A stretch of 64,000 nt of DNA from Dimorphilus gyrociliatus (taxonomy: Eukaryota > Animalia > Annelida): assembly GCA_904063045.1 (NCBI GenBank), contig CAJFCJ010000011.1, positions 1,178,001 through 1,242,000 on the forward strand, in the 5' to 3' direction. How positions within the stretch are numbered: position 1 is the stretch's first letter; every line of letters starts with the position of its first letter. The notes beneath the pieces are model-generated. The model saw nothing but the letters and a program-made list of their open reading frames with translations. It was not told the DNA's origin and did not search any database. Below are positions 15,318 through 52,242 of this stretch, one piece after another. The position numbers were made by a program, and so were the translations under genes.

Positions 15318-17470
15318 ATGTTTGGGAAACTGTGTTTATTCATATTTATTACATTCCTATTCGGTTTGTTTATATTAATAATAGAATTGTCCTATTTTTG
15401 GTTTATCTATCTAAACTAGTTATTAAATTTATATAGATCTGACAGTATCTGATGATCTAAGATTATATATAGATGGACCAAGTGAATTGTCGGAAAGCGA
15501 TAATAGTGTAAAATATTTTGTGTATAGGCTTACCGGAACGGGAAGTTGCACGTAAGCTAATTAATGCATTAAACTTTCTTAATAATATCATTTTATTAAA
15601 TTAGTTATTTCTTATTAGACGAAACGTTTCTTTATCAAATTCTGTAAGCGTCAAAGGGAATTTATTACAAGTGTTTAATTCTTCTCAAGTTGATGTTTCA
15701 TTTACTTTGATTATCACCGATAACGATATTAAGGAGCCCGATGACGAAATAACGTTCTTTCTAGATTGCATTGACGATTCCAATGGTCTACCAATTAAAT
15801 TCGAAAAACGTATTAAGATAAAAGATGACGATAGTAAGTAAACTATTCCTTCTATTGATATTTTCTCTTTATCTTTAAAATGACCTAATTTTAGCTCATC
15901 CATATAAATCTTCATTTCTTATGCAAAATTTCCTGTTAAATGTCTTATACGAAGGAAGATTGGAAGCCTTATATCTATATACTTTGAGAGGAATGGCTAA
16001 TTGCAAGTAAACTTTGAATAAAAATATAAAAGAGACTAAGTTGAAAAAAACACTATTAATATTTATCTCTTCTTGTCTTTTTCGTTTATTCTCTTTCAGT
16101 ATAAAATCATCAAATACATCTCGGTTAGAGGTAATTGGTAACTCGGAAAAGTTTCTTATGGCTAATTTAATATCTTATGTTATGCTTTACGCTGTTGAGA
16201 ATAGTAATATTGAAAATGATCAAACTGAGAGAATTTTCATTGACTGCCTCGATAAAAATACAAATAGACGAAGCTTTTATCAACATGAAATAACAATTAT
16301 TGATAACGATGGTAATGTTTATCATTAATTAATTACAGTAATTAATTAATTAATCAAATTTTAATTTATATCTTTTTTTAGGTGAAAATATTACAAAACC
16401 TATTAAATTTGGTTTACTCAGTTTGGAAGAAGTTAATGAGGATGAAGATATTGCTATTTTTGTCACTCCCCATTCAGGTTCAGGAGATTGTTTGTAAGTT
16501 ATTACGAATTGAATAGTTTGTTGACCTTATGTATTTAATAAATTTCAGAATAAGTTTAAGCGAAAACGAAATAGGAGAACTTACTGGTCCAAAGAATTTC
16601 TTCCTGGATGCTAATAAACGATGTACATTTATTTTTAAGCCGAAGAAGAATTTTAGGATTAAAGGTGATAGAAGAGTTGATATTTGTTTGACATGTACAA
16701 ATAGAATTTCGAAACGTGTTGATTATTCAAAGAAAAATATTTTAATTAGAGAAACTAGCCAAGATGATCCTTTTGACGTTATAAAAGCGACTGGAGATCC
16801 TCATTTTACACAAATTGTATCAGATGAATTAGCCGAATCAAAGAAATACGTTTGCTACGATATAGCCGGTAAAGCTGGCGATATTATAAATATCTTTCAA
16901 AAAACATTTAACGGTGATATATCGGTTTTGGGTGTATTAAAAGATGATTATTATATGCACAAGATATCTATATCATTTCTTAGTAAGAATTTATCAACAA
17001 CTACCGATGAGATCTATTTAAGCGATGGTAGAATTTTGAATTGGGAACAATTGGAATCTTATAAATCGTTTCCTTTCGGTAAACATTTTATAACATTCGC
17101 AAAGAATTATATTAAAATATTAGTTGAAAGTGACGAAGTAAACGATCCTTTCCTGAGTATCATTCTAAAAAGGTCTCATCATCCGATAACTGGCTATTAT
17201 TTAGACGTTATTATTCACGGTATAAATGGAAATTATCATGGAATGGATGGACTTATTGGTAGAATTGGAAATAATAAATTCAAATTTTACGAACCAGTAC
17301 AAAAAACGAATAATATTTGGAATAACGAGTCTAATCCTTCAAAAGTAGCCGTTGAAATTAATGGTTTACTAAAACCTGGAAGAATTGAAAAGAGAGAGGG
17401 ATTCGATTGTTGGCTCTTGAACACAAAAGATTTATTATATCCATATTCATTGAGTAGTTTTATATTCTAA
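15318..17470 (+). CDS. Secreted 3x Calx-beta-like + ITIH heavy-chain C-terminal domain protein (gene A)
   Basis: Signal exon MFGKLCLFIFITFLF; repeats with DNDIKEPDDEITF and IKDDD motifs; GDPHF at 16793-16807 followed by CYDIAG..G.LKDDYYMH..GLIGRIG..CWLL, matching the ITI_HC_C pattern. Confidence 0.82.
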
Positions 17471-17869
17471 ATAATTTTCATAATTCATTTCTTTTCGTAC
17501 TAATGTTAGAAAAAGAAATAAAACAACAACAACTCTAATAATAATAATAATAAATCAATAACTGATTAGTCTTTGCCTCAAGTTCAAATAGTAAATGATT
17601 TAATCGTTCCTAGTGCATTTATTTAAAAAAAAAAACAATTGAAAGTGACACGTGACTAGAAAGAAATATGGCTAGGAGTTAATGTTTTTGTTGAGTACTT
17701 ATCTACCATAAATAATATTTTATCCCTCTACATTTTAGAAAGAGGTTATTGAAGGTGAAAGTACAGTGTCTTATTTTGTAACCAATAGTGATTAGAAGAT
17801 AGGATAAGTCCTTTGAAAAGAAATTTAAATATTTTATATTGATATTTAAAGTCTTTAGGACTCTTTAAC

Positions 17870-20309
17870 ATGCTACTTGGAAAGAATTTACTCTTCGATA
17901 TTATCGTTATTGTTTATTCGTCTATTCGTAAATATCTCTCTCTCTCTCTCTCTCATATAGTTTCTAGGTCAAATAATTAAGTTAAACTACTTTAAACAAT
18001 AGACGTATCTCATGCCTCTTTCCTTCTACGTTTGGAGTCATTTAATCAAATGTACGAAAATGTTAGGGAGGTTATGGTAGCCTCATCAGTACAAGGAAGC
18101 GCTACGTGCAAGTAAGAAACTACCAACAGTTGATTATTATAAATTTAGATTCTGAACTATATATTGCGTTTTAGTATTCACTCGTCTAATCCTCAACGTC
18201 TACAAATTTACATGGGAGCAACAATAGAATTTGTACCTAATAAATCAGTAAATGTCATTTTGGAAGGAGTAGACAATAGCATCCTAGACGGAGAAGAACT
18301 CGTAACAATATTTTTTGTTTGCGTTGATAAAGAAACTGCTGAAAGTAGTACTTATTCTATATCAATGACGATTTTAGATAACGAAAGTAAGCATAAATAA
18401 TCTATGTTTCCTTTACAATATGTCTACTTTTTAAAGTCAATAAACTTCTACCTGGAAAAATCGAAATGGTTGCAACAACTACTGTTGAAGAGGGAAGTCC
18501 ATTCGAAATATCAGTATTTCGTGTACAAGGGGATTCTCAATGCCGGTTAATTAACTTCTTCAATATCAAACTAATGTACCAAATATATTCATTTATTTAT
18601 TTAAAAAAAAGGGCTTTTGTTTCCTCCACTTCCGATTTAACATTGAAAGATAATACGTATTTTTCTATGACGGATCAAGCTTTTAAGAAAACATTAAACT
18701 TTAACGTTATAAGCGATGGAAAAGCGGAAGGAAATGAACTTGTTACAATCACAGTTAGATGCCGTAACGTTCTTGGTGGGACGTATATTGATCACGTTGT
18801 TGGCATTGTCATAAAAGACTCGACAATTATTCCATTTGCCTTGCACATTATAGCTTTTAATTATATAAAGGAAGGTAAGATAGGGCATGTTGAGACTTAT
18901 GCTCAAGGAAGTGGATACTGCTCCGTTACATCTTCATATCCTCAACGATTGGAGATTATACAAGGGAAATCTTTAATATTCGACAATAATCTGATAGAAA
19001 TAGGCGTTTTATTCGAAGCAAAGAAAAATAATCAAGTAGATGAAAATCAAATGGTTTTTCTAAATTTTCACTGTACAGATAGCAATACAAATGAAAAAAC
19101 AAACTCTTACGTATCTTTAACAATTATAGACGCTGACGGTTTGGATTATTTTTATTATCCTTCTTTTTTAGATAAAATCAGTAGAGCTAACAATTAATTG
19201 ACTATAGTAACAGAAGAACTAGAGCCAGGTAGGTTAGAAATTCATACGACTACCGATGTAAGAGAAGGAGAGAGTTTCACGGTTCGAATACGTTGGCAAG
19301 ATTGGGAAAACGTTGGGAAAAAAGTCTTTTGCCAGTAAATCATAAAATACTCTTAATAACTAGATTTTCTTTTTACGATACTTACTTTATTCCTAATAGA
19401 GCTATCATATCCCGTCCATTCCAGCTTGTTTTACGTAATCCGTCTCATTTTGCCATAGGTTACGATGATCCTGAAATATATTTGGATTTCGAGGCATTAA
19501 ATGATAAAATTGTGGAAATAGATGAAACTCTAGACATAAATATACGATGCAGAGAAAGTTCAACTGTTCCATATATCAACCACATATTTTCCCTTATTAT
19601 TAGAGATTCAGATATGCAATCATACGGAGATCCGCACTTTATACAAACTGTTCTAGATGAGACTGAACACGATAAAAAAGCAATTTGTTATGATATGTTT
19701 GGAAAGCCAAATGATATAATCTACCTTTATGGTCAAGTTACAAATTATCAAAAAATATTTATCTACGGCCAGCTTAAAGATGATTATTATATGCACGTTG
19801 TAAAAGTTGTAACAAAGTTTGGTAATATAACGTCAAATGTTCACAATACTATATTACCAAGTGGTAAAACTCTTGGTTGGATTGATAGTGACAAGAAGAT
19901 TGTATCGTTCGTTGACAAATTGATTATAATTCAAAGGAAAAACATTATTGAAATTAGAATACCAAATAATATATTCCGCATAGGATTCTTAACGATTACG
20001 ATTCAAAGATCAAATCATTTAGAATACGCTTTAAATGTATATATTGATAGACAAATGAACGAAAATTATAATAAAATCGACGGAATCCTCGGTAGAGTTG
20101 GTAAGAGTAATTTCAAGTTCAATAAACCTATTCAAAATTCCAAAAATTTAAAATCTAATCAACGAGGATCAATAGAAATAAATGGAAAGTTAACTACTGG
20201 AATAATAATAAAAAGAGAAAAAGTTAATTGTTGGTTATTAAATATAAAAGATGCTATTTATCCTTCACATTTAAAGGAGTTTCTATTCAAGGAGAACAAT
20301 TTTATTTAG
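17870..20309 (+). CDS. Secreted 4x Calx-beta-like + ITIH C-terminal domain protein (gene B)
   Basis: Signal exon MLLGKNLLFDIIVIVYSSI (donor GTAAAT); ORFs 18164, 18466 and 19293 link through short introns; GDPHF at 19626-19640. Confidence 0.78.
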
Positions 20310-23300: not shown

Positions 23301-23427
23301 AAAAAATACGATTTAATATAGAGCACAGTCAAAAGTAAGTATTTAATGCAATACATCAGTACGAGACAAAAAGCTCTTCCTTAAATCCTTCAGAGAATAT
23401 TAAGTTATTTCTATTGAAAAAATAATA

Positions 23428-25415
23428 ATGCTTAGTCTAAAAGAGTTGACGATTCAAGCGATCGTGACAGATAAGACCCTTTTTGCACAAACAAGCTGGA
23501 AGGAAGCTAAAAATGTTAGCTTACCTTTTGGGATAGCTGACAAATTAATGAAATGTTTGGACGAAGAAGAATGCGGAATTTCAGAAAGCCATTTGGACTT
23601 TTTCAATAAGAAAGCATCGTTGAAAAATATTTCTATTCATGGTAATCGAATAAAGCATTTATCGAGTCTATATTTTTTAAAAAATCCACATTTGGAGACG
23701 ATTTCTATTGAACAAATGAGATCAATAAAAGTAAATACCTGGATTCGAGAAATTAATGGAGATAAATTGGAAAAGATATCCTTTAAACGTTGTCTATTTA
23801 AGACGAGAGAAAGAAAGTTTTCACTGTCTAATTTAAAAAGTCATATAGTATTGAAACCTTTAAGAAATATTAAAGTATTGGATGTTAGTTCAACCAATTT
23901 TGACAACTATTATTTAAAATTAACTTCAAGAGAACTTCATCTACTTGAAGAATTAAACATTTCAAAGACAAATGTTGATAGTCTGGAATCTATAAAGAAT
24001 CTTACTCAAATAACTTCATTAGATATTTCATATGTAACAAAATCACGTATAATACTTACCTACTCCTTCTTATACGCATTAAAGTCATTAATTTACTTGA
24101 ATGTGTCGCAAAACGATGTAAATAACAATCAATCTGATGTTTGGAGAGAGTTCTTTGACAAAGCCAACTGGCCTCAACTTCTCCATTTTAATACGTCTGG
24201 CCGTTGGAAAATAGATGGCAAACTATTAAAGTTCATTTAGTTTTTTATTCTTGTCTAGCATAATAAACTACTTTGTTATTTTTCTCTATTTTAGAAAGTT
24301 TCTAGGGAGACACTTAAACCTTGAATTTCTTGGTTTGGTTAATACAGAAAATACGGGAATTAATTGGCAAGAGGTTACAACAAATCATCCAAAAGCGACC
24401 TCTATTATAATCGTAAGACGATTACAATCAATTCCGAGATTATATTTTACTATTTCAATATCTTCAGATTCCATTTTTTTCTCACGAAAATCTTAAAAAG
24501 CTCCTTGAGTATGATAAAAGAGTGAAAATTAACATCTTATTTGAATTTATACCATGTTGGCTATCGAAATTGCACGAAATGTCTCATAATGCTAATTCAA
24601 TGGATGATTTTGAAAAGAATCAACTTATAGACGTAAACATTCTTTGCTTAAAAAAACACTATATAAAATGTCATTTTTTTTGGTGTTATTCCTCCTTTTT
24701 AGATCCTTATTTTAATATTAGATGAGGAAAAATACTTATTTCTAAACCTACAAGAAAATATTACCCAAGATTCTATAAAAATATATAATCGTACTTGTGC
24801 TCTAATTCAAAGTCTGGACACAGGAAATTTAAGTCTAAAGATAAGGAGAAAATTGTTTAATATTTGTTTCACAGTCTTTACGCAATCTTTGGATAATGAA
24901 GTACTAAATAGAACTAATAGGCTCATGCTTCGGATGAATTATGAGACAATGAACGAGGTTGATAGAATTTCTTGATAAGCGTTTATTAAATATTTTTAAT
25001 ATTCTAGAATTATAAAAGGTATGAACTCTTAATAAAGACATTTGAGAGATGTAGAAGTATCGAAGATATATCAGATAGTCATTTTCTTCTTAATCAACTC
25101 TTATCAAATATACAAATTGAAAAGGTATTATATTGATTATAAAACATGTTTATAACTAAACTTTTTCAAATTAAATAAAACAAGATATCCGATAAGGAGG
25201 TTATTACGATGGAAGAATACTTTTTAAAGTTCTTGAGTAATATCGACCAATTATGGAAAGAAGTTGGTGATCATGATATTCTTGATGTGAAAAATGATAT
25301 TGAAAAATTATTTAACGGTAATTTTATTGAGGAAATTGACGAAAGAAAATCAAGAAATATAACAAAAGCCTTACTTGAGCTTAAAGATTCTTTCTTTATA
25401 CAATTAAATAAATGA
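23428..25415 (+). CDS. ZYG-11/ZER1-like BC-box LRR protein (paralog b, subtype II)
   Basis: SLKELTIQAI + LPFGIADKL; LRRs LDVSST, LNISKT, LDISYV; six coding exons traced in frame. Confidence 0.83.
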
Positions 25416-25897
25416 TAACTGTATTTGTCAATGTTGTCCATATTATCTTATTCGTTTGCCTCTAATTGAATAAATAATGCTTTAACTAATACTTTAAATG
25501 GGCTTGTTCTCTCTTACATAGTTATTTCAACTACGTTCGTCCGTGGTATCTTCAATAAAAAATCGTTTATTATTCATTTAATGGATTCACGCAAAAAGTT
25601 CTTTTGTTCTACAATTACTTTCACTATATAAATTATTGTTGGTTATGCAGTTAATAATTATCTATGATTACTCTCTCATTTAATAGGATAATTCTTAAAT
25701 AAAGAATAAGTAGGGGGCGCTTTTTCGATTATTACCAGTTTATTTTCGTAAATAAAGTAAATTTTGCGCTCTCGATGAGAAGACTTCTTGTAATGTTTGT
25801 ATAGTTTGTATTGGAAACGTCTAATAAATATTATCAAATATCTCGCTTTACAAGTTGATATCATATAATAGTAAAACAAACATTTGAAACTAATTGG

Positions 25898-27827
25898 ATG
25901 TATACGCTAAAAGAATTATCCTTTCAAGTTATCGTTGAAAATCGTGATGACTTCTTTCATGAAGATAGCATGTTATTAAAAGTACCTCCCGCTATTGTGG
26001 ATGATCTTATATTCTATCTAAATAGGGAAGAAATTGGAATAAATCCATTTTATATAAATTTCTTTATTAAAAATAAGGTAATCTTTAGAAAAGTCAAGAT
26101 AAATGGATATCGTATTAGATACGAATCAGATTTATTATTTTTGAACAATCCTGATTTAGAAACTCTAGATATGGAATGTTTAAGATTTCATCGATTTCAC
26201 AATATCTTATCATTAATTAAGAGTTCAAACTTGAAAGAATTGGTTCTAGTAAATTTTGGAATATTCAATGAAGAATTCCCAATAGACTTGAATGAGATTA
26301 ACATTAATTGGAAAGCATTTAAGAATTTGTTAATACTAAAAATAGATTCTCTTTCCGGATATTCTAATTTGTTATTAATTCTATCTAACGAATTAAAGAA
26401 TTTAGAAGAATTAAGTCTCGGTAATTTCAATGGTAATTTTAATCTTTTGGAAAAGTTTGTCAAACTTAAATCTATTCAAATTAAAGATAGCAATTTCGAT
26501 CAGAATTTTCAAACAATATTCTGTATTCGTAATTTAAAGCTTTTAGAACGTATTATGATTCCGTTTTCTATTGGTAATACATGTCAACAGGATAGCTTTT
26601 TAAATACTGTCACATGGCCAAACTTGAAATACTTTCAGTCTGTCTGTATTCAAACAGATTGCGTTATAGAATTTATATCGTAAGTGTTTGTCTCTGTGTA
26701 AAGACTATGTGATAAGTGATTAGGTGTTCTCTTTTCAAGTCAATTTTCATCAAGACATCCTAAATTAAGATTTTTTGCCTTCAACTGCTTTAGACCAGTT
26801 CCATTAAACCTAGACAACATTATTTCAGCCCTAGCTCCTCAATTAGTAATAAAACAGGTAAATAACTAAATAGTTAATAATTCAATCAACAGAATTATCA
26901 TTAATCTATTGTTTTTTTCCAGGATAATGAGGAATTAAGTACAGAGAAACTTAAAAAGATGCTAAAGAACTTTGATGGAAACGATATAAAATACGCTCTT
27001 CCACCATTGAGAGAAAGAGATCTTTTTTCACTAAATCAATGGGAAAGGTATAAATACGCTGAGGTAAATATATTTCATTAAGGAATAATAGAAAAGTATA
27101 CATTTCAATAAAATTTTCTGAAAGATTATTGTTGACGTTATACATGAAAGAAGTTCAAAACTAAACTTTGCCGATGAAGAATTTCGAAGATATTTTTACA
27201 TAGCTTTGAAACATTTTATAGAACTTTCTAGTATTTATTACAATTTTAGACTTACTGATATGGTCTTTAGAGTTTGTCTAAGCGGTTTTCTACTTGATTC
27301 TAATATTGCTTCTACGAATGAAATTTTACTTGAAACACTTATAAATCATTTTAAATTCTTTAAAACTGTAAGTTAAGTTTATTAAATAGAAATTAAAGCT
27401 AATTTTTCTAGTTTAAAAATATAGCATAGGAAAAAATGGAATGTTTGCCTATCTATATTTCGTAAATACAATCAGATAGATATGATGTATGGTATCCGAT
27501 ATTTAAAACTAGCTATTCAAAGTCTATCATTGGAGGAAGTATGTTTATTTATGGTTTCTTTATTCTATTTCTACTAAAATCGTTTTTAAATAGTTTTCAA
27601 TAGATGAATTAATATTATTCAAAAAGTCCTCCTTCGAATATATTACTTACTTGAACTTTGTTGATCGAGACAACATTCTTAATGCATATAAGCTACCATT
27701 CGAAAGCTTTATTCGTACGGAAATTGAAAAAGAACTTACTCAGAGACAACGTAACGTTAAATCGGAAAGAGAGAAGAAAACTTTAGTTGAAAGGTTAAGA
27801 GCCACATTTAAACAAGTTTTTTCTTAG
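25898..27827 (+). CDS. ZYG-11/ZER1-like BC-box LRR protein (paralog c, subtype I)
   Basis: TLKELSFQVI + VPPAIVDDL; six coding exons traced to LVERLRATFKQVFS*. Confidence 0.82.
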
Positions 27828-28283
27828 TAAACTAATAGTTTGTTAATGATTTCTTCATTAATTACATTTAATACTTGCTTTATATACAAAAAGAAGATGT
27901 TACCCTTTACCAGTTTTCTCTATTGCAAAAAAAAATAATACAATTCCTAGTTTATCTTTTATTTTTAATAAATATACAATTGGAAAAATTCTCAAACTCT
28001 GTTAAATTTAATAAAATCTCAAGAAGCAATATAATAACAATATAAAAATAAACTCGAATGTACTACGAAAAGAATGACATGTACAATATGTTTTCATCTA
28101 TTCGAGAAAAATTCTTTGCAACATTCGAATATATTATTTAATGAGTTTACATCTATAAATTAGATTCTACCAAGAAATATTCTCGAGAGTCATTAAATAA
28201 TAAATTATTGGCAGCATTTTTGTAAATGTAAGATATTGAGGCTCAGCTAACCAGCTAACTCCATTGAAACAAACAAATCGTTC

Positions 28284-30386
28284 ATGGATTCATCGCTTTC
28301 TAGGGCTTCGTCAACAGATTGTATAGAAACGCTAAAGGAATTATGCTATCAGAAGGTTGTTTTCAACCGACATACAATTTTCAAAGAAGGAAATCGGGTT
28401 ATAGATTTGCCATCACCAATTATTGATGAACTTATTATTCTTATAAACGATAAAGAAGTTGGAATTAGACCATTTTATCTAAATTCTCATCTGAGAAATG
28501 CAAAGAATATACAAATAAATGGACATCGTATTAAAAATGATTCAAATTTATCATTTTTAAGCAATCCTAATCTAGAAACATGTATAATAAACGATTTAAA
28601 ATATCATAATTTAAGCTATATACTCTCTTTAATCAAAAGTGAACATTTGAAAAAACTCTCTCTATCAGAATTGGAAGGCTCTAAAGTAAATTTGAAAACT
28701 GGTGATATATTTCCAAAAATTGAATGGAAAATATTTCAAAATCTTCAAGTATTGAAAGTGTGTTATCACGATTCAAATCATTACTTTCTAGAGAATTTAT
28801 GTATTGAATTGAAAAATCTAGAAGAATTGGATTTTGAATGTTTTAATGAAAATATTTATCCTATTAAAAGACTTACTAAACTTAAACGCTTTAGACTTAG
28901 TAACATAAGTCATTCTCATATAAATAATTCAATCTGTTCATTTGGAAATCTTGAATTGTTAGAATATTTTGAAATAAATGTAAATGAACGAGCAAAGAGA
29001 CTCGATTCCAAAGTGGAGAATTTCTTGAAATCTATTTCATGGCCAAATTTGCAATACTTCAATTACTTGCCTTTAAATAAAGTCAATTACATAAATGAAA
29101 TCTGGTAAGGAAATACATAAATTGATAATAATTATTATTATAACTTTTATTAATTTCTACCTTTTACAGTGATTTTGTACATAGACATCCTAAATTACAA
29201 TTTCTAGTTGTTAATATTGAACGTTCGTCTCCATACTATCCTTATCGAGACGAAACAAACCTTGAAGAGAAATTATCAATGTTATCAAAGAATTTAATTA
29301 TAGTTAATGTAAGAATTTTTCAATATGTTACTATGAATGTATATATAACTAATCTATATTTTCATCATTTTAAAGAATTACTACGGATTAACAATGCATA
29401 ATTTTAAAAAGATGTTTGCAATTATGAAAGAGGAAGAGGTTAAAAATTATATCCTTTTGAATGAGAATCTATTATACGGAAGCTGCTTTCTACATTATAG
29501 TAACGATGAAAGATTTTTAACATTAAATTGTTGGGAAAGAGAGAAATATTTCGAAGTTTGTCAAATAATTCTTAAATTTTAATGTATTTTAAGTATTCTT
29601 TTGTTTTTTATTCATAAAAAGATTCTCGTTGAAATGATGAACAGAGACAAACATTCCACTCGTCAAAGGATCGGATATTTACATTTTTACAGGCTCTTAT
29701 TTACCTTTAATCAATATAAAAGCTACTGTCATAGCGTTAAGCTTAAAAATAGGCTTATAAGAATGACATGCGATGTAATTCTACTTGAGCTTAGTTGTTC
29801 TGCAAAAGATGATCAAACATTCGATATATTTGATAAATATATTTCACCTTTTCGAATGGTAATTTACATTTTCTTATACCAGTTTCGTTGTTCTAATAAT
29901 TATCCTATACTTTTTCAGATGACTGCAATAGAAGCTGAAGATTGTCTAGTCGCTCTTAAAACCCATAGCTATACAGCCCATTTACAAATAATCAAGTTTT
30001 TAAGTGTTCTACTATTTAACTGTATCGATATAAGCAAGGTAAAATTAATCTGTCTCTTCTCTTTCTCCCAACTGAATTGAAGAGTATCATGTATTTAATC
30101 GAAAATCTTATTTCAGTTCTCTTTAGAAGTGTTAATGAAATTGAAAACACAATTTGCCGAAAGCTTTGAAATAAGAAATCGTAGACTCAACAGAATTCAT
30201 AGATCAAATGATAACACTGAAGACAGTTGCCTTATTTATCTATTTCTAAAATATTTTAAATCGGAAATTGAATTAAAAAGACAGAAAAAACTTACTGTGA
30301 TGCCTTGTGAAGATGTAAAACTACCAAAGAGAAAATTTCAAACTTTAAAGAAACTTTTTACAGATTTTCGTAAATTTTTCTCATAG
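28284..30386 (+). CDS. ZYG-11/ZER1-like BC-box LRR protein (paralog d, subtype I)
   Basis: TLKELCYQKV + LPSPIIDEL; six coding exons ending LKKLFTDFRKFFS*. Confidence 0.82.
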
Positions 30387-30449
30387 TGGAAAATGGCAAA
30401 TTCATAATTTTTAGGTGCTAATTATTTATTATATTTATAGAAATTACTT

Positions 30450-32361
30450 TTAAGAAAATGAATTTAAATGTATTTTACAAAATGTAGCAGTTTCATTAAT
30501 AATTCGTTTATCAGTATGATTCGACAGATCTTCTTCTTTCAAATTCTTAGTAAGGCAATCATTTAGTACTTTGATTTCTGTGAATGATAACTGTCGGATA
30601 AAGAAAAGTATTTTGTAAGTGAGATATTCATACTGTATATACTATATATTTAAAAACCTTTGATACTTCTATCTTTTCAAAAACAAGCTTTAAAAGCTGA
30701 CAGAATGATTCAATACATTCTGCATAATGAAAGTAATGAATAATCAAATTTCGCGCAAAGATATGTTTGTTGTGAATCTGCATCATTAATAAATATTTTT
30801 AATTTATACATTTATAATATTTAAATTAGTAACAAACGTGTGAAAGATATTCTGAACAGTAGAGTAAACATTTAGTTAAAGAACTTCCCCATATTTCAAA
30901 AGAATCATGTGAAATTATCTCGGATTTGCAGTCATTCTCAATTAATTTCGCAAAAAATTTATAAAATGTAAAGAATAACCTTAATTTCACGCCATTCGAT
31001 AAAAATTCACCAGTTTTCGTACTATTCTTTAATAAACAACTTATCTTTTTCAGGCATAGCCATCCCATAGAACTCAAATGATAAATCTCATCTTCACAGT
31101 TAATGTCGAACCATTTATAATAATCAAATAAGTTTAATAGAATCTAAAGAAATGGAAATAATAAGTTGAAAATCATATTATAGATACGAAATAATCATAC
31201 AGATATTTGATCCGATAATGTATTGTCTTTTGATAGACTATCTCGCTGTAAGCACTTTCTTATTGATTGATGGATAAAATTGGATGCTTCTCTTACTTGA
31301 CTACTATGATTTTGTAGCCAAGTAACAATTTCTGATTCCGATAGAAAACCATAGTTCTATGTTGAATATATAGATTAGAAATGATACAAATATATCATAA
31401 ATCTAACAATAATCAAATTTTCACTATTTAAGTGTTTCTTGAAATTCTCTTCCTTCGATGGAGACAACATTACTCTTAAAAATTCCAAAGTTTGGTGATT
31501 TTTAATAAAAGTCCTGCTTATGAAAACAGCTAAGTTAATGTTGTATCGAAAAAGGAGAAATAAGATACGTTACACTAAGTTCCCTTCATCTTTAATAAAA
31601 TAACCATGTATATCTAAAGACTTTATTTGGGAGTATTTAGCATGATTCAAGAAATCATCCAATTCTAAATCATGCGATCCGGATACTTCAGTGGAAACAA
31701 TCATCTTTTTAATGTTCTCTAAGGTTAAGAGAGACGAGAAAGTATCACATGACCAGAAGCTAATCTTCATTGAACAGTCCAAGGTATGTAGTTTTTTCAA
31801 TTTGGATAGAGGCGCAAAATTGTTTACATTATTAAACGATAAGTTCAACGTTTCAAGATTGATTAAATTCAATGCAAAATCATTAAGACTTTCATTTGTT
31901 ATATAACACCAAGATACATTCAAATCAACGATATTTTTTAAGTGTACAATGTGTCTACTAAGAAAAGTATCGTTATACATTGTTGCTAAGGCAACTTTTC
32001 CTCGACTTATCTTCAGAGCTTTTAAATGATTCGATTCGATATATTCAAGCCACTTGAAATTACTACAAGCTAAATTATCTATTTCTAAACTTTCAATATG
32101 TTTTCCTTGAAATAATTCAAAGCAATTGTAATCAATTAATTTGTTTCCTTGTAAGATTATCCTTGTGAATTGGCAATCAATTATTTTGAATATTCTCAAA
32201 TGATTTTCCGTTATACCTAGATCACGTTCATTAATATAATGTAATAATTCTTCTGATATTTTAATTGGTAGTTTAATTGATGTTTTATAACTTTTAAGTA
32301 AAAGCGCCAATGGATCTTTGGCTATTTCCTCATAAGCTAACGTCTTTAAAATCGTTGCCAT
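30450..32361 (-). CDS. ZYG-11/ZER1-like LRR protein (paralog e, subtype II)
   Basis: ILKTLAYEEI + LPIKISEEL; LRRs; FIKNHQTLEFL; six coding exons traced to KIHLNSFS*. Confidence 0.8.
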
Positions 32362-33031
32362 ATTTTTTCTGTAAAAACATTTAATACATAAATCATATAG
32401 ATAATTTCAATATTTTCCTATAGGTATAGGTGCTAGTTTAATGAACAACCTTTAAAATGTAGCTTATACAGATGAGGGCAATGATAGACAAAGAAGTAAC
32501 ATTTCTGAAATTGAATTTTTTTTAACACGAGTATAAACAATATGGCTACCGAAATTGGCGCCAAAAATTTTAAAACAACTGACTTATTGTCTAAAAAACA
32601 ATTAACGGTCAATTAAAATTTTTCTTTGCGGTTTTTAGCTACTTAACTATATTTTAAAGGACTAAATTAGGTTTTTTTATTAGTCGAAAGAATCGTTTAA
32701 GTTTAATTATTTAATAAAGTATGTAAAACTTATTTTTTATTGGACATTGTAGAACAAAAGAGCGAGTACTTTCCACCAATAGATGGCATTAAAAAAGATA
32801 AAAAGTTTTGATACCAGTTTCTAGACGAAACGTCAGTCTGGGCAAATCTCCGCTAAGGAGGAGCATGGGAATAGCTTTGAATTAGTGACAATTCTTTTCG
32901 CCAGTTTTGCATAAGTTTCAATTGTATAGACATTGAAAATGTGATTTGCTTAAAATCTATTCTGTTCATAGAGATAAATAAATTGAATTTTGCATTCTTT
33001 TCAGATTGTAAAGAACGAAAATTTAATCGTT
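32362..33031. promoter_or_regulatory. Divergent (bidirectional) promoter region between paralogs e and g
   Basis: Head-to-head starts 670 nt apart, both preceded by 5'UTR splice acceptors; contains ATTGGCGCCAAA (E2F-like on both strands, 32554-32565). Confidence 0.45.
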
Positions 33032-34884
33032 ATGAACATGTTTAGTTTGAAAGAGTTAGCCCTTCAAAAGATTGTAAAGGAAAGGGAGTCATTTTTTCAG
33101 AATTCACCAAAGAATGGTTACATAATCCCGTATAGAATTGCTGAAGAATTATTGAGTCGACTTGACGAAGAGGAATTTGGAATTCCCGAAAATTATATAA
33201 AGTGTTTTCTTGGAAAGAAAGCTATTTTGAAAAATGTCAAGATGGATGGACATCGTTTGTCTGACAAGTCTTATCTGTCTTTTCTGAAATGTAGTTATAT
33301 AGAAACAATTTCCATAGAGAATATTAGACACATGGGAATTAAAGATTGGTTCCATCTAGTTAATGGAAGTAATCTAAGAGAATTATCTTTAAAGCAGTGC
33401 GTATTTCGTCTAGGAAATGGAAATAATTCCAGCGTTAATCTCTATGATGAATTCGATTTGAGGTCAATGAAATGTCTAACGGTACTTAACGTTAGTTTTA
33501 CAAATTTTGATTATCAATATCTCAATTATATCTGCAAAGAATTGCCAGATTTGGAAGAATTGAATATTTCCAGTACATTAGTTGATGATTTAACGCCCCT
33601 TGAAAAGCTAAAAAATTTGAAGGCACTCAATTGTTCATATTGTCAAGATAGAGCTCTATATTTGACCTATTCGTCCTTACACCAGTTAAAAAAATTAGAA
33701 TGGTTAGATTTGTCCCAAATGATGGAAAGACGAAATGAAGAAGAGAAAATTTCTGAATTTATCGTATCTGCTCAATGGCCAAATTTACAACATTTGCATA
33801 TGTTTGGCTGTTGGCGATTAAGCCCCGAACTAATTCCAATTTTCTTAAAGAATCATTCCAAACTAAAATATCTTGGTTTGAACTATTCAGAACAAGGCTC
33901 TATAGACTTAAATGAGATTCGACAGAATTATCCGTACGGATCATTTCCTTTAGTTATCACCGAGTTGACTATGGAAACATTTCGAAACTTTCTGAAATAT
34001 TCTCTAACTGCCAAAAAGGAATTTACGGAAGATCTAATGTCAATTTACTTTAAGAATTGTCTTGCAATAAGCAATCACGACTACGAAATGACAATACTAT
34101 CGGATTTTGAAAAGAACCAAATACTAGATATTCTTATAGATTATATTGTTACGGCAAAAAATAGCTTAAATTCATCTTTAGGAAGTTTTGAGCTGTTAAA
34201 TTTTGTTGTTGGCTTTCATATCTATTGTTCCCTTTTTCTAAGATTTAAGGATTTATGCTCTGATTGGAGAAAAAAGAAAAAGATATTTGATAGCTGTTTA
34301 ACAGCTTTCAATCATTGTGTCAATGAAGAAAACATAAATGTTTTACATTTAAAGTTACTTCATGTTTATTCAAATTTCTTTCAGACGGTAATTCAATTAA
34401 TTCAATTAATATTATTCTGATTAATTGAAATTGTTTTATTTGTTTCTTTCTATAAAGACTCAAGAAAAATATGGAATAGCAATGAAAATATTCTCGAAGT
34501 GTCAAAAAAGTAGTGATATACTTGAGAGTATTCCTCTATTAACTGAATTATTTAGTACACTCGATTGGGAAGAGGTAGAGTATCTTCTTTCTTCTTTTTT
34601 TTTCGTGTTATTAATCTCTTTTAATCTTCATGTTTTAGTTATCGGACAAAAATATTCAAGAGTTACACTTGAGCTTTATCGGCTTTATTGATCAATCCAA
34701 AAGAGTTTTGAACTATACAGAATCGATTGTTCTATTGAAGGAACTCTATCAGAAAAAGCTTAGATTAAGAGTAAAGACGAGCTTACAATCGATTATTAAG
34801 ACAGTCAAAATTAATAGATGGACAAAATTCAAATTATCTCTAAGGAAGACTTTCAATCGTCTAAAATTGATAAAAAGGAAATGA
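33032..34884 (+). CDS. ZYG-11/ZER1-like BC-box LRR protein (paralog g, subtype II; three coding exons)
   Basis: MNMFSLKELALQKI + IPYRIAEEL; uninterrupted exon 33032-34387, then two short introns; ends KLSLRKTFNRLKLIKRK*. Confidence 0.85.
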
Positions 34885-35128
34885 TAAGAAAAAGAAATCA
34901 AGGCTATCTTTCTTTGTTTTTTTTTCCCCTTTTTTTTGAAATTCTTCTTTTTGCTATGATTGAATGATATTTAAAAAAGGAATAAAAAGAGCAGCATTTA
35001 CATTTAACTCTATAATTAATTTATTGTTTATTGTTTATTTGAACGAAATTAATCTAAAGAAAGGAAAACTTATTTAGAATATTGAAGTTTGTAAACAATA
35101 AACAAATAAACAAACTCTTTTCCTTTAT

Positions 35129-37298
35129 TCAGAATAAATGGGAATGGGAATAGGAAAAAACGTAATCATTTAAAGATGATGGATAAAGAGCATCTTTAAC
35201 GTTTAACAACCAACAATCAGTTCCTCCTCGGTTATCTATTCTGGCTGTACCAATACGACCATTTACTTCAATTGATACTCTTAAATTCCCATGTAAATCT
35301 CTTTCCTCTTGAACAGATTCGTAAAATTTGAAATTATTCTTACCAATTCTTCCTAATAATCCATCAATTCCAATATATTGTTCGTTAATACCCTTAATTG
35401 CTACGTCCAAGAAATACCCTGTAGTTGGTCTATGCGATCTTTTAATAATAATCTTAAACGATTGATGGAAGAAGTTGTCTTGAATTTTTGAAATATTCAT
35501 CAAATCCTTTTTCAAGATAACGCAATAGTTTCCTTTATATAAGGTTTGCTCTTGTAGAAAGTCGTCCCATTTAAGTATATGATGATCAGGAAATATAATT
35601 TGATCAGTTGTTAGAGTAATATTCCCAGAGGTTGATGTTAATTTAACTATATGCATATAGCAATCGTCCATTAATTTACCATAAACTGACAAATTCTCTT
35701 CAGTTAATTCTCTTATTAGAAGTATAACGTCACCAGCTTGACCGTAAACATCATAACAAATCATTTTCAATGCCTTTTCCCTCTGATCGAAAACTCTTTG
35801 CTTAATATGAGGATCTCCCGTAGCTTGAATGTCTGAATTTCTAATTAAGACATTTAACGATAGGCTAGTTGTATCCGTAGAATGTAAATCTTGACATTGA
35901 ATTTCAATTGTACATTTTCTATCGTTTTTATCTGCATTGTTGTACAAAGCTTCAAATTGAAAATATTGAAAATTCGTCTCCTGCATATCGAATTTAGTAG
36001 GTCCAACAATTTCTACATCCGGAATGGAAGGACTGTTCATTCTTTTTTAAGAAAAATTTCAAAAGATATATGATAAATTCTATTAGAAATATCTTACTCG
36101 CAACGACCGTAACCTTTAATTCTATGAAAAATCATGTCAACAACTTGACCTTCATTAACATCAACATAACCAATAAAACCAGCGGTGAAAGGTTCATTAA
36201 CAATTAAGACTATATATGAAAAATAGAGAGGAAAATGTCTTAAAAGAGAGAAGATATACTAACTTTGATATTTTAATATAGTTGTTGATAATTCGTAGAC
36301 AGTTTGCTTCTTATTATTAAGATCTAAACAATCTAAACGAATAAATACAACTATATTCTCAAAATTCGAATCTCTTTCGGCGTATAATCCAATATATTTT
36401 AATGAATTCTTTGTATATAATTGTTCTTTACCATAAATTACCCTTAAACGTCGTCGATTTAATGAAAAAACCCTAAAATTAAAGAAAATGTACTGTATAT
36501 ATATATACATTATATAGATATTTAAGTGAATTTCTATATTTTACCTACAAAACCCTGAACCTTTAACAGTAAAAATATTTATTATTTCTGAATGTCCTTC
36601 CAATATATTATTAACAAAGTTAACTTGCATAAGAAACGGAGATTTGTAAGGAAGTACTAAAATATTTGGCGTTTTTTTTAAATATGTTCTATTAATAAGA
36701 AACGTCTATTTAAGATATTTTAACGTACTATCATCATCTTTAACGATTATTAATTTTTCAAAAGTAACATTTTGACCATTTGATTCATCAATACAATCTA
36801 GACGAAATATAATATTTAGGTCTGATTCGGGTATGCTGTTATCTTTAATGTGTATTATATAATATTCCTCGATGTTATTTTCGTAAAATTCCGTTGGAGA
36901 AACACCAGAAATTTGAACTTTTGTTTTCGATGATAAACTCGATCTATTATATTAAGACATTAAAATGAACGTTAAATTGAACGCTTGTAAAAGCATAAAG
37001 AAGAGAAAATAATTCGACTAACGTGCACTTTCCCCTTCCACTCAATAGTTTAACATTATAAACTATTGAATCATCACTTTCTGCTACTTCACTTGGTCCA
37101 ATATTGACCAATTTTAGTAGATCAGAACTGACGAAATCTGAAATATAACATCACAAAATTTAGAGCGAGAGAGAGAGAGGAAGGGAGGGATGAGGAAAGG
37201 AGAGGAAAGAAAAAAGAAATAAAACTTTATCCTTTACCTAACAGCGTCAAAAGGAAGACGAATATGAGAAAATAATTATATTTCTTATATTCAAACAT
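35129..37298 (-). CDS. Secreted 3x Calx-beta-like + ITIH C-terminal domain protein (gene C)
   Basis: Signal exon MFEYKKYNYFLIFVFLLTLL; exons traced in frame through three repeats; GDPHI at 35804-35818; DDCYMH variant. Confidence 0.8.
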
Positions 37299-38191
37299 TT
37301 TCCTTATAGAATAAAAACAAAGAAAAAACGACAATAGTTCCTATTTCTGTACATTTTTGTTTTCTAAAAGATGTTTACTAACCCCTGTCCGATGACGACT
37401 GTGCCTAGTTTATCAGAACTTCATATTTTTTTTCTCTTTGAGGACTTTTAACGACAGTTAATTTGTTCAATTTCTTTTTTTGTTTTTTTACATATATATA
37501 CTTTATATAGATTTAACAAATATACAATATAACTGCAATTTTTAATGTCAAATATTAATATAGGACATCTATATGATCAATACGAAATGACCTTTATAGA
37601 GATTGTCCTTGAGATCGTATTTACAAATAAAGGTTTAGAAAGATATGTTTTTTTAGCTGTATAATTTTAAGAAAATATAATTCGATTGTATTAACCTAAA
37701 TTATATTTAGGTTAGAACTATAAGGTCCGTTTAGAATATTGTATAAGAAATATTAAATATAGAATTGTTGTAATGCACATTCCGAATGCGATCTTCTCGA
37801 GGATTATCATAAAAATAAACTAGACTTTTTTCAATGTATTGCAAATTTTTAAATTGCGGATCAGGAGTACTAGATATTATACTGTGTATTTAGCTTCTTT
37901 ATTTTCCTTTATGCTAGCTACAATAATCTATCTATAGGTAATAAAAAAAACATCTCTTTTGAGTTTAACATCAACGGCTAAAAGTTTTTCTTATTGTAGA
38001 ACATATGTAGGAAAAACAAAAAAGAGACCTAGATTGAAGAAGAGTACAGTACGAAATGTAATTGACATGGTAAAAAAAAGAGAAAGAAAGCAGACAGTTC
38101 TTTTAAATAGATTTCAAGTAAACATAGTTTACTTATGATTTGACTGTATTCATTTATGAATATACCAAACAAATGAAATGATAATATGATA

Positions 38192-40312
38192 TTAAACGTG
38201 TATATCTATATCAAATGCATACGGATCGGATGTAATGAAATCGCTCACGGTATTAGATATCAACAAATCTTTAATAGAAAGTAGCCAACATTCAACGCTA
38301 TTTCTCTCAACTATTCGTCCAGTTATTAAATGCCCGTTAATTGTTACAGCAACGTTCTGATCTATATAATTGCCTTTACCCCTTTGAACGGAATTATAAA
38401 ATCTAAAGTTATTTTTCCCTATTCTTCCCAAAAGTCCATCAGTATTATAATAGTTATTAGAGATACCATTGAATGATATATCTAGAAAGTATCCGCTAAT
38501 CTGGTGATTTGATCTAACAATAATAACTTCTATTGAATTCCTTCTTGCATTACCGTACAGGTAAGAAATCTGTAATCTATTCTTTTTAAATATAACTGAA
38601 TAGTTTCCAACAAAGTACAACATTTCGACAACAAAATTATCCCATTTCAAAGAAGCTCCATTACTAAAATGTATTGTTTCAGTATCAAATGTCACATTTC
38701 CCAGTCGAGATATAATCTTTATAGAATGCATATAATAGTCATCTTTTAACTGACCGTAAACAGACATACCATTTTTACTATTCTGTTTTAAGATAAGTAT
38801 AGTATCGCCTGAATTTCCAGAAATATCGTAACATATCGATTTTAAAGATTTTTTTCTGTCATCGTAAACCGATTGTATAAAGTGAGGATCTCCAACTATA
38901 GAACTACCAATACCAGGTATTTTAGTAATGTAAAACTGCCGTCTTTCCTTATATGTACTATTGTCCGATATATCTGTACATTCTATGTCCAAATGTTCTT
39001 TTCGAGTTAGCATGTGTTTAATACTAACATGAGTTTTAATAACTTGTACAGCTTGTGAAATATTCCCATTTAGTATAAATTGCCCTGAAGTGAGTAATTT
39101 ACCAACTGAAGAATCTAGTACTATTCTGATTAGAGTAGAGATTATAATATATTATCTTATAAGGGTTTGTTTGTTTGTTTTGTTTTACCTGCAAGAAGCA
39201 GACCCTGAACGCCGTAAAATAATAATACTTAATTTTTCAGACTCCATAACACTTTGCGACATCAACGTACTAAACGTAAAAGACGTTTCCACCATTGACG
39301 TATCTGATACCATATAAAATTCATTTAATATAGTAAAAACTATTAAAAGTAATCTACCTGTAACGTGTATAACTGTTGTAGGATAAAATAGCGTCGTTTC
39401 ACTACCGTCCTTATCATCTATACAGGTGAGCTTTAAAGTTGCTTCATCGTTTCCTTCTACAGTTGGATGACTTATTGCAAACAATTGGAATGAGACCATT
39501 TGTGAAAATTCAAGATGTTTTGCTGCTTGCGATAACTTGGATATCATTATAACATTCTTATTACTAGTAGCTAATCTGTTTATAGAAAAGAAGAAAAATG
39601 GAAGAAAAAAGATTTCTATATGCTTTTGTTTGTTTATTGACTTACGAGCAAGTTCCCGTTCCAGACACAGCTTCAACTATTAAATTAAATATTGAGCCGT
39701 TAAAAACACTACCATGAGCCATAACCCTTGTACTAAATTGGGATACAAATGGGACACCTGAAAAGAATTATCAAAAGCTTTTTATCGATTAAATTCCCCT
39801 CTTGTCTAATACTCACTATCGTCGTCTCTTATGGTAAAGCTTTCAAAAAATCTGACTGGCGTATTTGTTCCATTATCAGTACAATATAAAAAGAATACAA
39901 TCTTTTCATCGGGTTCCTCTATTTTATCATCAATTATTTTTAAAATATACGTTTCGAATGAATGATTCTCATTGAAGTTTACTGGTCGTTTAGGCATTAT
40001 TTCAACTGACTTGTTATTCGAGACGCTATGTCTTAATTAAGTAAAAAAACGAAAATATCAAGGTAATTAATTTTTAAAAATTCAATATTTACATGCAATA
40101 TCCTTCTCCCTTTTGCCTTGCAACATTATATACAACTGTCTTATCCCCTTCACCTACTTGGCATGGACCATCAATAGTAAGTTCTAGATGTTCACTAATC
40201 GCACACTCTGTTAAAATTTAATATGACTAAGTAAAATGTCAAAATTGATTAATATAATTATAAAACACTTACCGATAATAGTCAAAAACAAAACAAAACT
40301 AATAATTTTCAT
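38192..40312 (-). CDS. Secreted 3x Calx-beta-like + ITIH C-terminal domain protein (gene D)
   Basis: Signal exon MKIISFVLFLTII (donor GTAAGT); IDDKIEEPDEKIVF..TIRDDD Calx-beta motif; GDPHF at 38879-38893; ITI_HC_C-like tail in ORF 38192..39013. Confidence 0.82.
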
Positions 40313-51700: not shown

Positions 51701-52185
51701 GCGAGTTTTAGATAATAATCCTGTTGATTAACAAATCTTCTAATAATCTTTCACACAAAGTACTATAAGTCACTTTAATCAACAGCAACTTCTTTACAAT
51801 AATCTTTATTTAAAATAAAAGAAGGACTATTCTTTAAAACATCAAATTTCCTCGCTATTGTTAATCAATAATACCACCTTCACTTAATAAATAAACTTTA
51901 AAAATAAAATCTGATTGAACATGTGTTTCATTCAGCTTACTGTCAGAAAATCAACTACAAATAAACATGCAGTGTATCATCAATTTACAAATCGATATAA
52001 TAGTATTAAATCTATTAGGGAGAACGTTAAAAAACGTATATTTAATTAAACAAATGTCTAATATTAAAAACCAACTTATCCAAAACAATAAAAGTTAAAT
52101 TCTAAAATCAGCTAACTGCTTCAACTGCAATTTTTTAAATTATTTGATCAGGTGCTTGTTTAAAAATTTCAATTAAAAACTTTCG

Positions 52186-52193
52186 TATAAAAG
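52186..52193 (+). promoter_or_regulatory. Putative TATA box of ADAMTS-like copy 2
   Basis: TATAAAAG ~50 nt upstream of the ATG at 52243. Confidence 0.55.
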
Positions 52194-52242
52194 GCCAAAA
52201 ATATTTTAGAGAGACAGAAGCAATCTTCTTCTCCAATTTAAA

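Follow-up and report, generated by a model that had tools for sequence, protein, structure and literature searches.

Four paralogous genes (g1 to g4) in a 64-kb stretch of Dimorphilus gyrociliatus DNA, hereafter the window, encode proteins in which an array of Ig-like repeats precedes a roughly 225-aa C-terminal domain. Both this architecture and the remote homology of the domain to ITI_HC_C (PF06668), a vWD-like β-sandwich, can be held with considerable confidence. All four genes are best explained as belonging to a large family that underwent expansion within the Dimorphilus lineage. For GDPH self-cleavage that leads to a covalent protein-glycosaminoglycan ester, the textbook case is the ITIH propeptide, so far tied to VIT-vWA heavy chains known mainly from chordates. 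A first-pass annotation had placed four paralogs between positions 15318 and 40312, and the outermost start codons fall exactly there, on the forward and the reverse strand respectively. The genes, the exons of g3 and g4 and the codons of the predicted cleavage site are as follows.

g1, 15318-17470, forward strand: signal-peptide-like N-terminus, 3 Ig-like repeats, GDPHF and, C-terminally, an ITI_HC_C-like domain, with the stop codon at 17468-17470.
g2, 17870-20309, forward strand: 4 Ig-like repeats, GDPHF and an ITI_HC_C-like domain; located by tblastn, with a predicted start.
g3 CDS, 35129-37298, reverse strand: 578 aa in 7 exons; signal-peptide-like N-terminus, 3 repeats, GDPHI and an ITI_HC_C-like domain.
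g3 exons, reverse strand: 37298-37238, 37137-37023, 36943-36729, 36656-36544, 36471-36264, 36209-36098 and 36041-35129; from RNA contig joints, giving a clean ORF with one stop.
g4 CDS, 38192-40312, reverse strand: 582 aa in 7 exons; signal-peptide-like N-terminus, 3 repeats, GDPHF and an ITI_HC_C-like domain.
g4 exons, reverse strand: 40312-40273, 40207-40093, 40031-39817, 39757-39646, 39575-39358, 39303-39189 and 39125-38192; from RNA contig joints and GT-AG placement, giving a clean ORF.
GDPH codons of g1, 16793-16804, forward strand: predicted Asp|Pro cleavage site.
GDPH codons of g2, 19626-19637, forward strand: from six-frame translation.
GDPH codons of g3, 35807-35818, reverse strand: from six-frame translation.
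GDPH codons of g4, 38882-38893, reverse strand: from six-frame translation.

The g1 coordinates are based on tblastn with DgyrCDS8596/8597 at about 100% identity, on placement of the start peptide and on the last-exon ORF at 16529-17470. For g2, the start is probably its own ATG with a hydrophobic N-terminus at 17870, connected to the next exon by a phase-1 GT..AG intron. By inspection of the sequences, the N-termini of all four proteins are hydrophobic and resemble signal peptides. Six-frame translation of the whole window yields exactly four GDPH motifs, one per gene, which read GDPHF in g1, g2 and g4 and GDPHI in g3, in agreement with the earlier claim that GDPH(F/I) is present in all four copies.

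RNA contigs of run X1 show g3 and g4 to be separate GT-AG spliced mRNAs: the g3 contig spans 37442-35115, whereas the g4 contig ends at 38143, past its stop codon; the last intron of g4 was placed from a contig-piece boundary together with the ORF. The public annotation joins the genes pairwise, with a g1 model that splices out at 17455, just 5′ of the stop codon, and thereby fuses g1 to g2. These fusions, of 1127 and 1236 aa and each containing two GDPH domains, were rejected as real proteins. The g4+g3 fusion was rejected since the RNA contigs of the two genes terminate and begin separately, with zero depth between them, while the g1+g2 fusion was rejected by analogy with g4+g3, together with the in-frame stop and the plausible start codon of g2.

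The last exons of g1 to g4 share 34-40% identity and 52 invariant columns, including GDPH, CYD, DDxYMH, DGxxGRxG and CWLL. When the four C-terminal exons were searched as a profile against 1.8 billion sequences, 155 representative proteins matched at E ≤ 1e-3, 50 of them at E ≤ 1e-30, numbers that indicate a real family rather than chance. One relative, P0129 from run SRR24058836, reaches 1880 aa. Short relatives with GDPH 5-50 residues from the first Met were rejected as cargo-less forms, their ORFs starting at internal Met codons of last exons in unspliced contigs.

Three independent lines of evidence relate the C-terminal domain to ITI_HC_C. For the last exon of g1, the AF2 model has a pLDDT of 67.6, with the blocks of the C domain mostly at 70-87. 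With predicted models on both sides of the comparison, the top 25 Foldseek matches among Swiss-Prot models were all C-termini of ITIH1-6 (E 6e-11 to 9e-7; rmsd 4.8 to ITIH6 residues 1076-1313), vWD domains of mucin and VWF matched more weakly (E about 4e-3 to 6e-3), and the ESM Atlas fold search returned a 212-aa ITI_HC_C cluster with 184 residues aligned at an rmsd of 2.5 and a TM of 0.74 by hit. In language-model features, the three nearest clusters all carry PF06668 (0.92, 0.91 and 0.89), followed by Root_cap, VWD, DUF1521 and RGM_C. Together with sub-threshold Pfam matches, fold and features back the earlier proposal of an ITIH-propeptide-like domain. PF06668 is the only Pfam family matching more than two of 96 family members; its best E is 2.9e-4, and examples are P0119 (17.1 bits, profile positions 40-130) and P0103 (16.1 bits, positions 26-134). 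None of the 96 reached its gathering score of 27 bits, the best lying at about 17 bits, and a Pfam search of the single ORFs of the four window proteins gave no match at E ≤ 1. The HMMER search for ITI_HC_C that had been suggested as a check gave sub-threshold matches in six of the 96 relatives and none in the four window proteins. PF00094 (vWD) matched neither the window proteins nor the 96 family members, and C-domain alignments A1 and A3, run as profiles against PDB sequences, gave chance-level matches only. Such chance-level matches, across the C-domain and repeat profiles, included 14-3-3, protocadherin-15 EC1 and V-ATPase H. VIT and VWA found no Pfam match at E ≤ 0.1 in annotated proteins covering all four genes, which upholds the earlier statement that these proteins lack both domains.

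Selection on the DPH site, previously argued from invariance in four copies, finds stronger evidence in its conservation across the 96 related C domains, where D is kept in 78/90, P in 84/91 and H in 78/92 (about 85-92%), leaving about 10-15% of relatives without D, P or H. Two cysteines of the C domain, both located after DPH, are retained in 95/96 and 96/96 sequences, and no conserved cysteine pair spans the cleavage site. The domain ends at most 15 residues from the protein C-terminus in 127 of 130 cases (median 2), the three exceptions being the fused models of the window. This consistently C-terminal position, combined with the lack of a conserved bridging disulfide, makes an ITIH-like release after cleavage plausible. 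The number of cysteines N-terminal to GDPH is odd in g3 and g4, so occasional intermolecular or bridging disulfides are possible. In the AF2 model of g1, the residues just before GDPH have a pLDDT below 50, and the turn that GDPH would form between strands 1 and 2 is not visible.

Among known systems, the ITIH C-terminal propeptide is by far the best structural match and lies in the nearest feature clusters. The window domain likewise carries DPH(F/I) at its N-terminal edge, occupies the extreme C-terminus of a secreted protein, and contains two cysteines with none bridging the site. Unlike the ITIH proteins, those of the window come from an annelid and carry 3-4 Ig-like repeats as cargo, with no VIT or vWA; sequence similarity to ITI_HC_C stays below the Pfam threshold, and cleavage is putative and ester formation hypothetical. 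In the C-terminal domains of ITIH proteins themselves, whose topology is VWD-like, GDPH lies between the first two strands (PMC10880436). The GDPH-bearing vWD domains of FCGBP, MUC2, MUC5AC, BMPER and SUSD2, together with RGM, share the β-sandwich fold class, a GDPH near the domain start and the autocatalytic Asp-Pro chemistry that is predicted, by analogy, for the window proteins. However, they match far more weakly (Foldseek E about 4e-3 versus 6e-11 for ITIH), and the window proteins have no C8/TIL modules, place the domain terminally rather than internally, and have no cysteine just upstream of GDPH through which a disulfide could tether strand 1. Next by features and fold come the plant Root_cap (PF06830) and bacterial DUF1521/NopE1 self-cleaving domains, with lower similarity, in other kingdoms and in other protein contexts; DUF1521 proteins are also cleaved at GD|PH (PMC6506597).

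The explanation we moderately favor is that of a secreted repeat array with a self-cleaving ITIH-like tail. The products of g1 to g4 would be secreted modular proteins in which a signal peptide is followed by an acidic repeat array (3-4 units) and the ITI_HC_C-like domain, with the Ig-like repeats (E-set, Calx-beta-like) probably disulfide-bonded. Within the secretory pathway, the side chain of the Asp would attack the peptide bond to the following Pro, as happens in ITIH and in GDPH-bearing vWD domains. The protein would thereby be split into a repeat array that carries a reactive Asp anhydride at its new C-terminus and a separate C-terminal domain whose first residues are PH(F/I). Because no disulfide bridges the site, this domain could depart like the ITIH propeptide. 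The anhydride would then either be hydrolyzed or react with a hydroxyl or amine on a glycan or protein outside the cell. To our knowledge, the vertebrate acceptor (the chondroitin sulfate of bikunin, then hyaluronan) is not to be expected in an annelid. Self-cleavage at Asp-Pro is, by analogy, probable, while covalent transfer to a matrix acceptor seems rather unlikely. In ITIH3 the new C-terminal Asp is esterified to chondroitin sulfate (PMC8267560), and in FCGBP the mutations D→A/N or H→N block cleavage (PMC10880436).

The cargo consists of repeats of about 106 aa, three each in g1, g3 and g4 and four in g2, each encoded by two exons and carrying two invariant cysteines, and the repeat model (pLDDT 95.1) adopts a generic Ig-like sandwich. 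These repeats had initially been named Calx-beta, an identity that is not confirmed, since Pfam gives no match and PapD/FimC chaperones, MSP domains, CARDB and Calx CBD1 resemble the model about equally well. PF03160 matched none of 22 repeats even at E ≤ 10 and none of the whole annotated proteins, the NCBIfam search of the repeats returned no match, and repeat alignments A2 and A5, used as profiles against PDB sequences, gave chance-level matches only, with no Calx-beta chain. That the repeats are true Ca2+-binding Calx-beta domains, which would make the cargo a calcium-stiffened adhesion rod, is doubtful, although several observations point that way. Calx CBD1 and NCX CBD1 are among the structural matches (Z 10.2-10.5 over 96-98 residues) and show the highest identity, 18-19%; language-model features hint at Calx-beta/LapA clusters (score 0.83, to be read as a lead only); and the ESM Atlas fold search, whose rows mix Calx-beta, CARDB, LapA and LTD, is headed by a cluster that includes some Calx-beta members. 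Calx-beta domains (NCX1/CALX CBD1-2, integrin β4, ADGRV1) are similarly Ig-like sandwiches of about 100 residues and seven to nine strands, arranged in extracellular tandem arrays. Furthermore, the first repeats of g1, g3 and g4 display, by eye, an acidic D-x-D..E..D-E motif and a terminal DDD resembling those of Calx-beta, at positions that would correspond to those where CBD1 binds Ca2+. Against this reading, the motifs are degenerate in most other repeats, the cysteine pair in each repeat is not a Calx-beta feature known to us, and in structure the repeats lie no closer to Calx-beta than to other Ig-like domains of the E-set type, the PapD/FimC chaperones (Z 11-11.9) and MSP domains (Z 10.3-10.8), along with CARDB, being equal or better.

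The Asp-Pro bond might instead be cleaved solely as a folding or stabilizing step, with the fragments staying non-covalently joined, the anhydride hydrolyzed and the protein serving as a soluble or adhesive component of matrix or mucus. This reading, which we judge fairly unlikely, draws on the finding that every GDPH of FCGBP is cleaved with no covalent adducts found, the anhydride being simply hydrolyzed (PMC8267560), and on the increase in vWD stability upon cleavage (PMC10880436). It also fits the conservation of the C domain along its full length, not at DPH alone, as expected if the domain had an enduring role and were not shed like a propeptide. Nevertheless, the domain is nearer to ITI_HC_C, where cleavage leads to an ester, than to vWD, the fragments have no conserved disulfide to hold them, and the invariably terminal position is propeptide-like. 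It is improbable that no cleavage occurs and GDPH is only a conserved β-turn in a binding or oligomerization module, for although some relatives keep the domain after losing D, P or H and uncleaved vWD domains are common, these three residues are about as conserved as the core Cys, Trp and Gly in 96 divergent sequences. Moreover, all tested well-studied GDPH sites of the vWD/ITIH fold class are cleaved (PMC10880436, PMC8267560).

The self-cleaving ITIH-like tail on a secreted repeat array remains the preferred reading. Four public gene models are corrected by the analysis, which also delineates two domain families not covered by Pfam. An ITIH-kind domain behind unrelated Ig-like cargo in a protostome suggests that the ITI_HC_C-like domain works as an autonomous module, and the family is large enough for comparative work. 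At about 580 aa, its members are small, tractable proteins in which to ask what decides between hydrolysis and transfer of the Asp anhydride. More speculatively, the domain may be a portable C-terminal cassette that arms upstream cargo with an Asp anhydride, by which many dozens of Dimorphilus secreted proteins would become ester-linked to glycans or proteins in the mucus, cuticle or egg cocoon. If so, ITI-type protein-to-glycan ester cross-linking would be older than, and independent of, the vertebrate bikunin/hyaluronan system.

The four paralogous genes g1–g4, each encoding a repeat array, a GDPH sequence and a C-terminal domain, are arranged as two tandem pairs in mirror orientation, with a cluster of LRR genes between them:

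15318-17470, + strand, g1
17870-20309, + strand, g2
23428-34420, four genes on the + strand and one on the - strand, LRR gene cluster of five paralogs between the g1/g2 and g3/g4 pairs
37298-35129, - strand, g3
40312-38192, - strand, g4

The whole locus looks like an old inverted duplication centred on the LRR cluster, whose Pfam matches (LRR_4 and LRR_8) are sub-threshold to borderline, one gene pointing to Zer-1-like LRRs. The window is AT-rich (~27% GC), and the introns of its genes are short and of the GT-AG type; D. gyrociliatus is a miniature annelid with a genome of 73.8 Mb (PMC7854359). Two 2 kb stretches (10001-12000 and 52001-54000) stand out at ~39% GC where the background is 25-30%, probably because coding exons of other genes are densely packed there.

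The predicted proteins are ~100% identical to D. gyrociliatus CAD5120018 (DgyrCDS8601) and CAD5120013/14 (DgyrCDS8596/8597). These public models merge g4 and g3 in the first case and g1 and g2 in the second, where a splice-out is placed just 5′ of a stop codon. Transcript evidence was taken from contigs of the one public run containing the sequence; these contigs are spliced, and the run is therefore RNA-derived. The g3 contig (depth 45) starts at 37442 and has six GT-AG introns of 54-100 nt, while g4 lies on a separate contig (depth 431) ending at 38143, ~50 nt beyond its stop codon, and depth is zero over 37584-37945 between the two. Word depth in this single run is thus ~10-fold higher for the g4 contig, contig depth being a poor measure of expression. 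Translated across the RNA contig joints, g3 is a clean open reading frame of 578 aa and g4 one of 582 aa. Since g3 and g4 are separate transcripts, the public g4-g3 fusion is wrong; by analogy, the g1-g2 fusion is likely to be wrong as well, g2 presumably starting from a separate ATG at 17870 with a hydrophobic N-terminus, in frame via a phase-1 intron. Each of the four N-termini has a signal-peptide-like hydrophobic core (best 12-residue Kyte-Doolittle mean 2.2-2.8), and no C-terminal anchor is apparent in the four proteins.

The first-pass annotation described paralogs with three or four repeats followed by GDPH, and this was confirmed: g1–g4 contain 3, 4, 3 and 3 repeats, and the only four GDPH occurrences in the six-frame translation of the window fall one in each gene. 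Their last exons share 34-40% identity and 52 invariant columns, including GDPH, CYD, DDxYMH, DGxxGRxG and CWLL. A profile of the C-terminal exons searched against 1.8 billion proteins retrieved 155 representative clusters (E<=1e-3). Twenty matches were looked up, of which 13 were named, all from D. gyrociliatus and on several scaffolds, and the others came from read assemblies. The family has expanded greatly, and specifically in this lineage. Its members have between one and four repeats, and some place a long, unrelated and unannotated N-terminal region ahead of the same C-terminal domain, such as DgyrCDS3694 (1145 aa) or a 1880-aa open reading frame (P0129; read-assembly contig L002, 1-5864). 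In the latter, the unrelated N-terminal region is largely unannotated, and the family domain, matched by the family profile at E 1.5e-43, carries NDPH. These varied N-terminal regions fit the earlier idea of a portable cassette. A contig from another read assembly (L001, 1-6618; SRR23372229, 29% GC) holds a back-to-back pair of family genes. One of them has three repeats and the C-terminal domain, with ADPH replacing GDPH; being a single uninterrupted open reading frame, it lacks the introns of the window genes. A predicted 833-aa protein outside the window (P0059) contains FLYWCH and MULE transposase domains together with part of a family C-terminal domain, and may reflect either insertion of a transposon beside a family gene or gene-model fusion.

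Pfam does not directly recognise the C-terminal domain in the g1–g4 proteins. To relate it to known folds, the last exon of g1 was modelled using AF2 (pLDDT 67.6; most C-domain blocks 70-87). In Foldseek searches against Swiss-Prot models, the top 25 matches were all ITIH1-6 (E 6e-11 to 9e-7), aligned over their C-terminal 200-300 residues, with mucin and VWF vWD domains ranking after them (E ~4e-3 at best). A fold search of the ESM Atlas returned a 212-aa ITI_HC_C cluster (184 residues aligned, rmsd 2.5, TM 0.74 by hit). The PDB fold search gave weak vWD matches only, consistent with the lack of any ITIH-propeptide match in the PDB by sequence or fold. By language-model features, the nearest three clusters all carry PF06668 (0.92, 0.91, 0.89), followed by Root_cap, VWD, DUF1521 and RGM_C; the last three are families that self-cleave at GDPH. 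When 96 members were scanned singly, PF06668 was the sole Pfam family matched by more than two (six members, best E 2.9e-4). Fold, language-model features and sub-threshold Pfam matches, as three independent lines, support the proposed link to the ITIH propeptide as remote homology, in agreement with the published vWD-like topology of ITIH C-terminal domains, which are not annotated as vWD and place GDPH between the first two strands (PMC10880436). As had been noted, VIT and vWA domains are missing: neither was matched in the annotated proteins covering g1–g4. The combination of a repeat array with an ITI_HC_C-like domain was absent from the named or Pfam-annotated matches, and our literature search found no paper describing it. 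What is new is the combination of domains; the self-cleaving module it builds on is a known one.

Each repeat spans ~106 aa and contains two invariant cysteines; it is encoded by two exons, of which the first ends in G-x-G-x-C. An AF2 model built with an alignment of 22 repeats (pLDDT 95.1) is a nine-strand Ig-like sandwich. Structurally it resembles PapD/FimC chaperone N-domains (Z 11-11.9), MSP domains (Z 10.3-10.8), Calx/NCX CBD1-2 (Z 10.2-10.5) and CARDB/LapA-type domains. The first-pass reading of the repeats as Calx-beta was not confirmed: Calx CBD1 has the highest identity among these structural neighbours (18-19%), but none of the 22 repeats matches PF03160 even at E<=10, and repeat profile searches of the PDB found no Calx-beta chain. 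Language-model features lean towards Calx-beta (0.83), as a lead only. The DxD..E..DE and terminal DDD motifs, kept by the opening repeat of g1, g3 and g4 and lost in the other repeats, presumably resemble the calcium-binding site of CBD1. Reading the repeats as Calx-beta is plausible, though not proven; they are E-set Ig-like domains with their own conserved cysteine pair, possibly derived from Calx-beta.

In the alignment of 96 family C-terminal domains, the predicted cleavage site is kept at D 78/90, P 84/91 and H 78/92, values similar to those of core residues (Cys 95/96 and 96/96, Trp 92/96, Gly 95/96). This gives stronger evidence for selection on the site than the invariance in four copies on which it was first proposed. 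DPH precedes both conserved cysteines and has no cysteine immediately upstream of it, whereas FCGBP-type vWD domains retain their first strand after cleavage through a disulfide (PMC8267560, PMC10880436). In 127/130 cases the end of the domain is no more than 15 residues from the protein C-terminus, the three exceptions being fused window models. Acidic repeat arrays (pI 4.7-5.4) are joined to neutral to basic C-terminal domains. Together, site conservation, cysteine placement, terminal position and charge split favour ITIH-like behaviour. A glutamine five residues after the Asp (GDPHFxQ) is also kept in 86/96 relatives; cleavage of FCGBP is influenced by a glutamine that forms a hydrogen bond with the cleaving Asp (PMC10880436), although at a different sequence distance from it.

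In the proposed mechanism, autocatalytic cleavage at the Asp-Pro bond of GDPH would release the C-terminal domain, leaving the repeat array with a reactive C-terminal Asp. This residue could then meet one of two fates: hydrolysis, the outcome in FCGBP, or transfer to a glycan, the outcome in ITIH3, where the acceptor is chondroitin sulfate (PMC8267560). It is reasonable to infer that the g1–g4 proteins may be covalently stapled.
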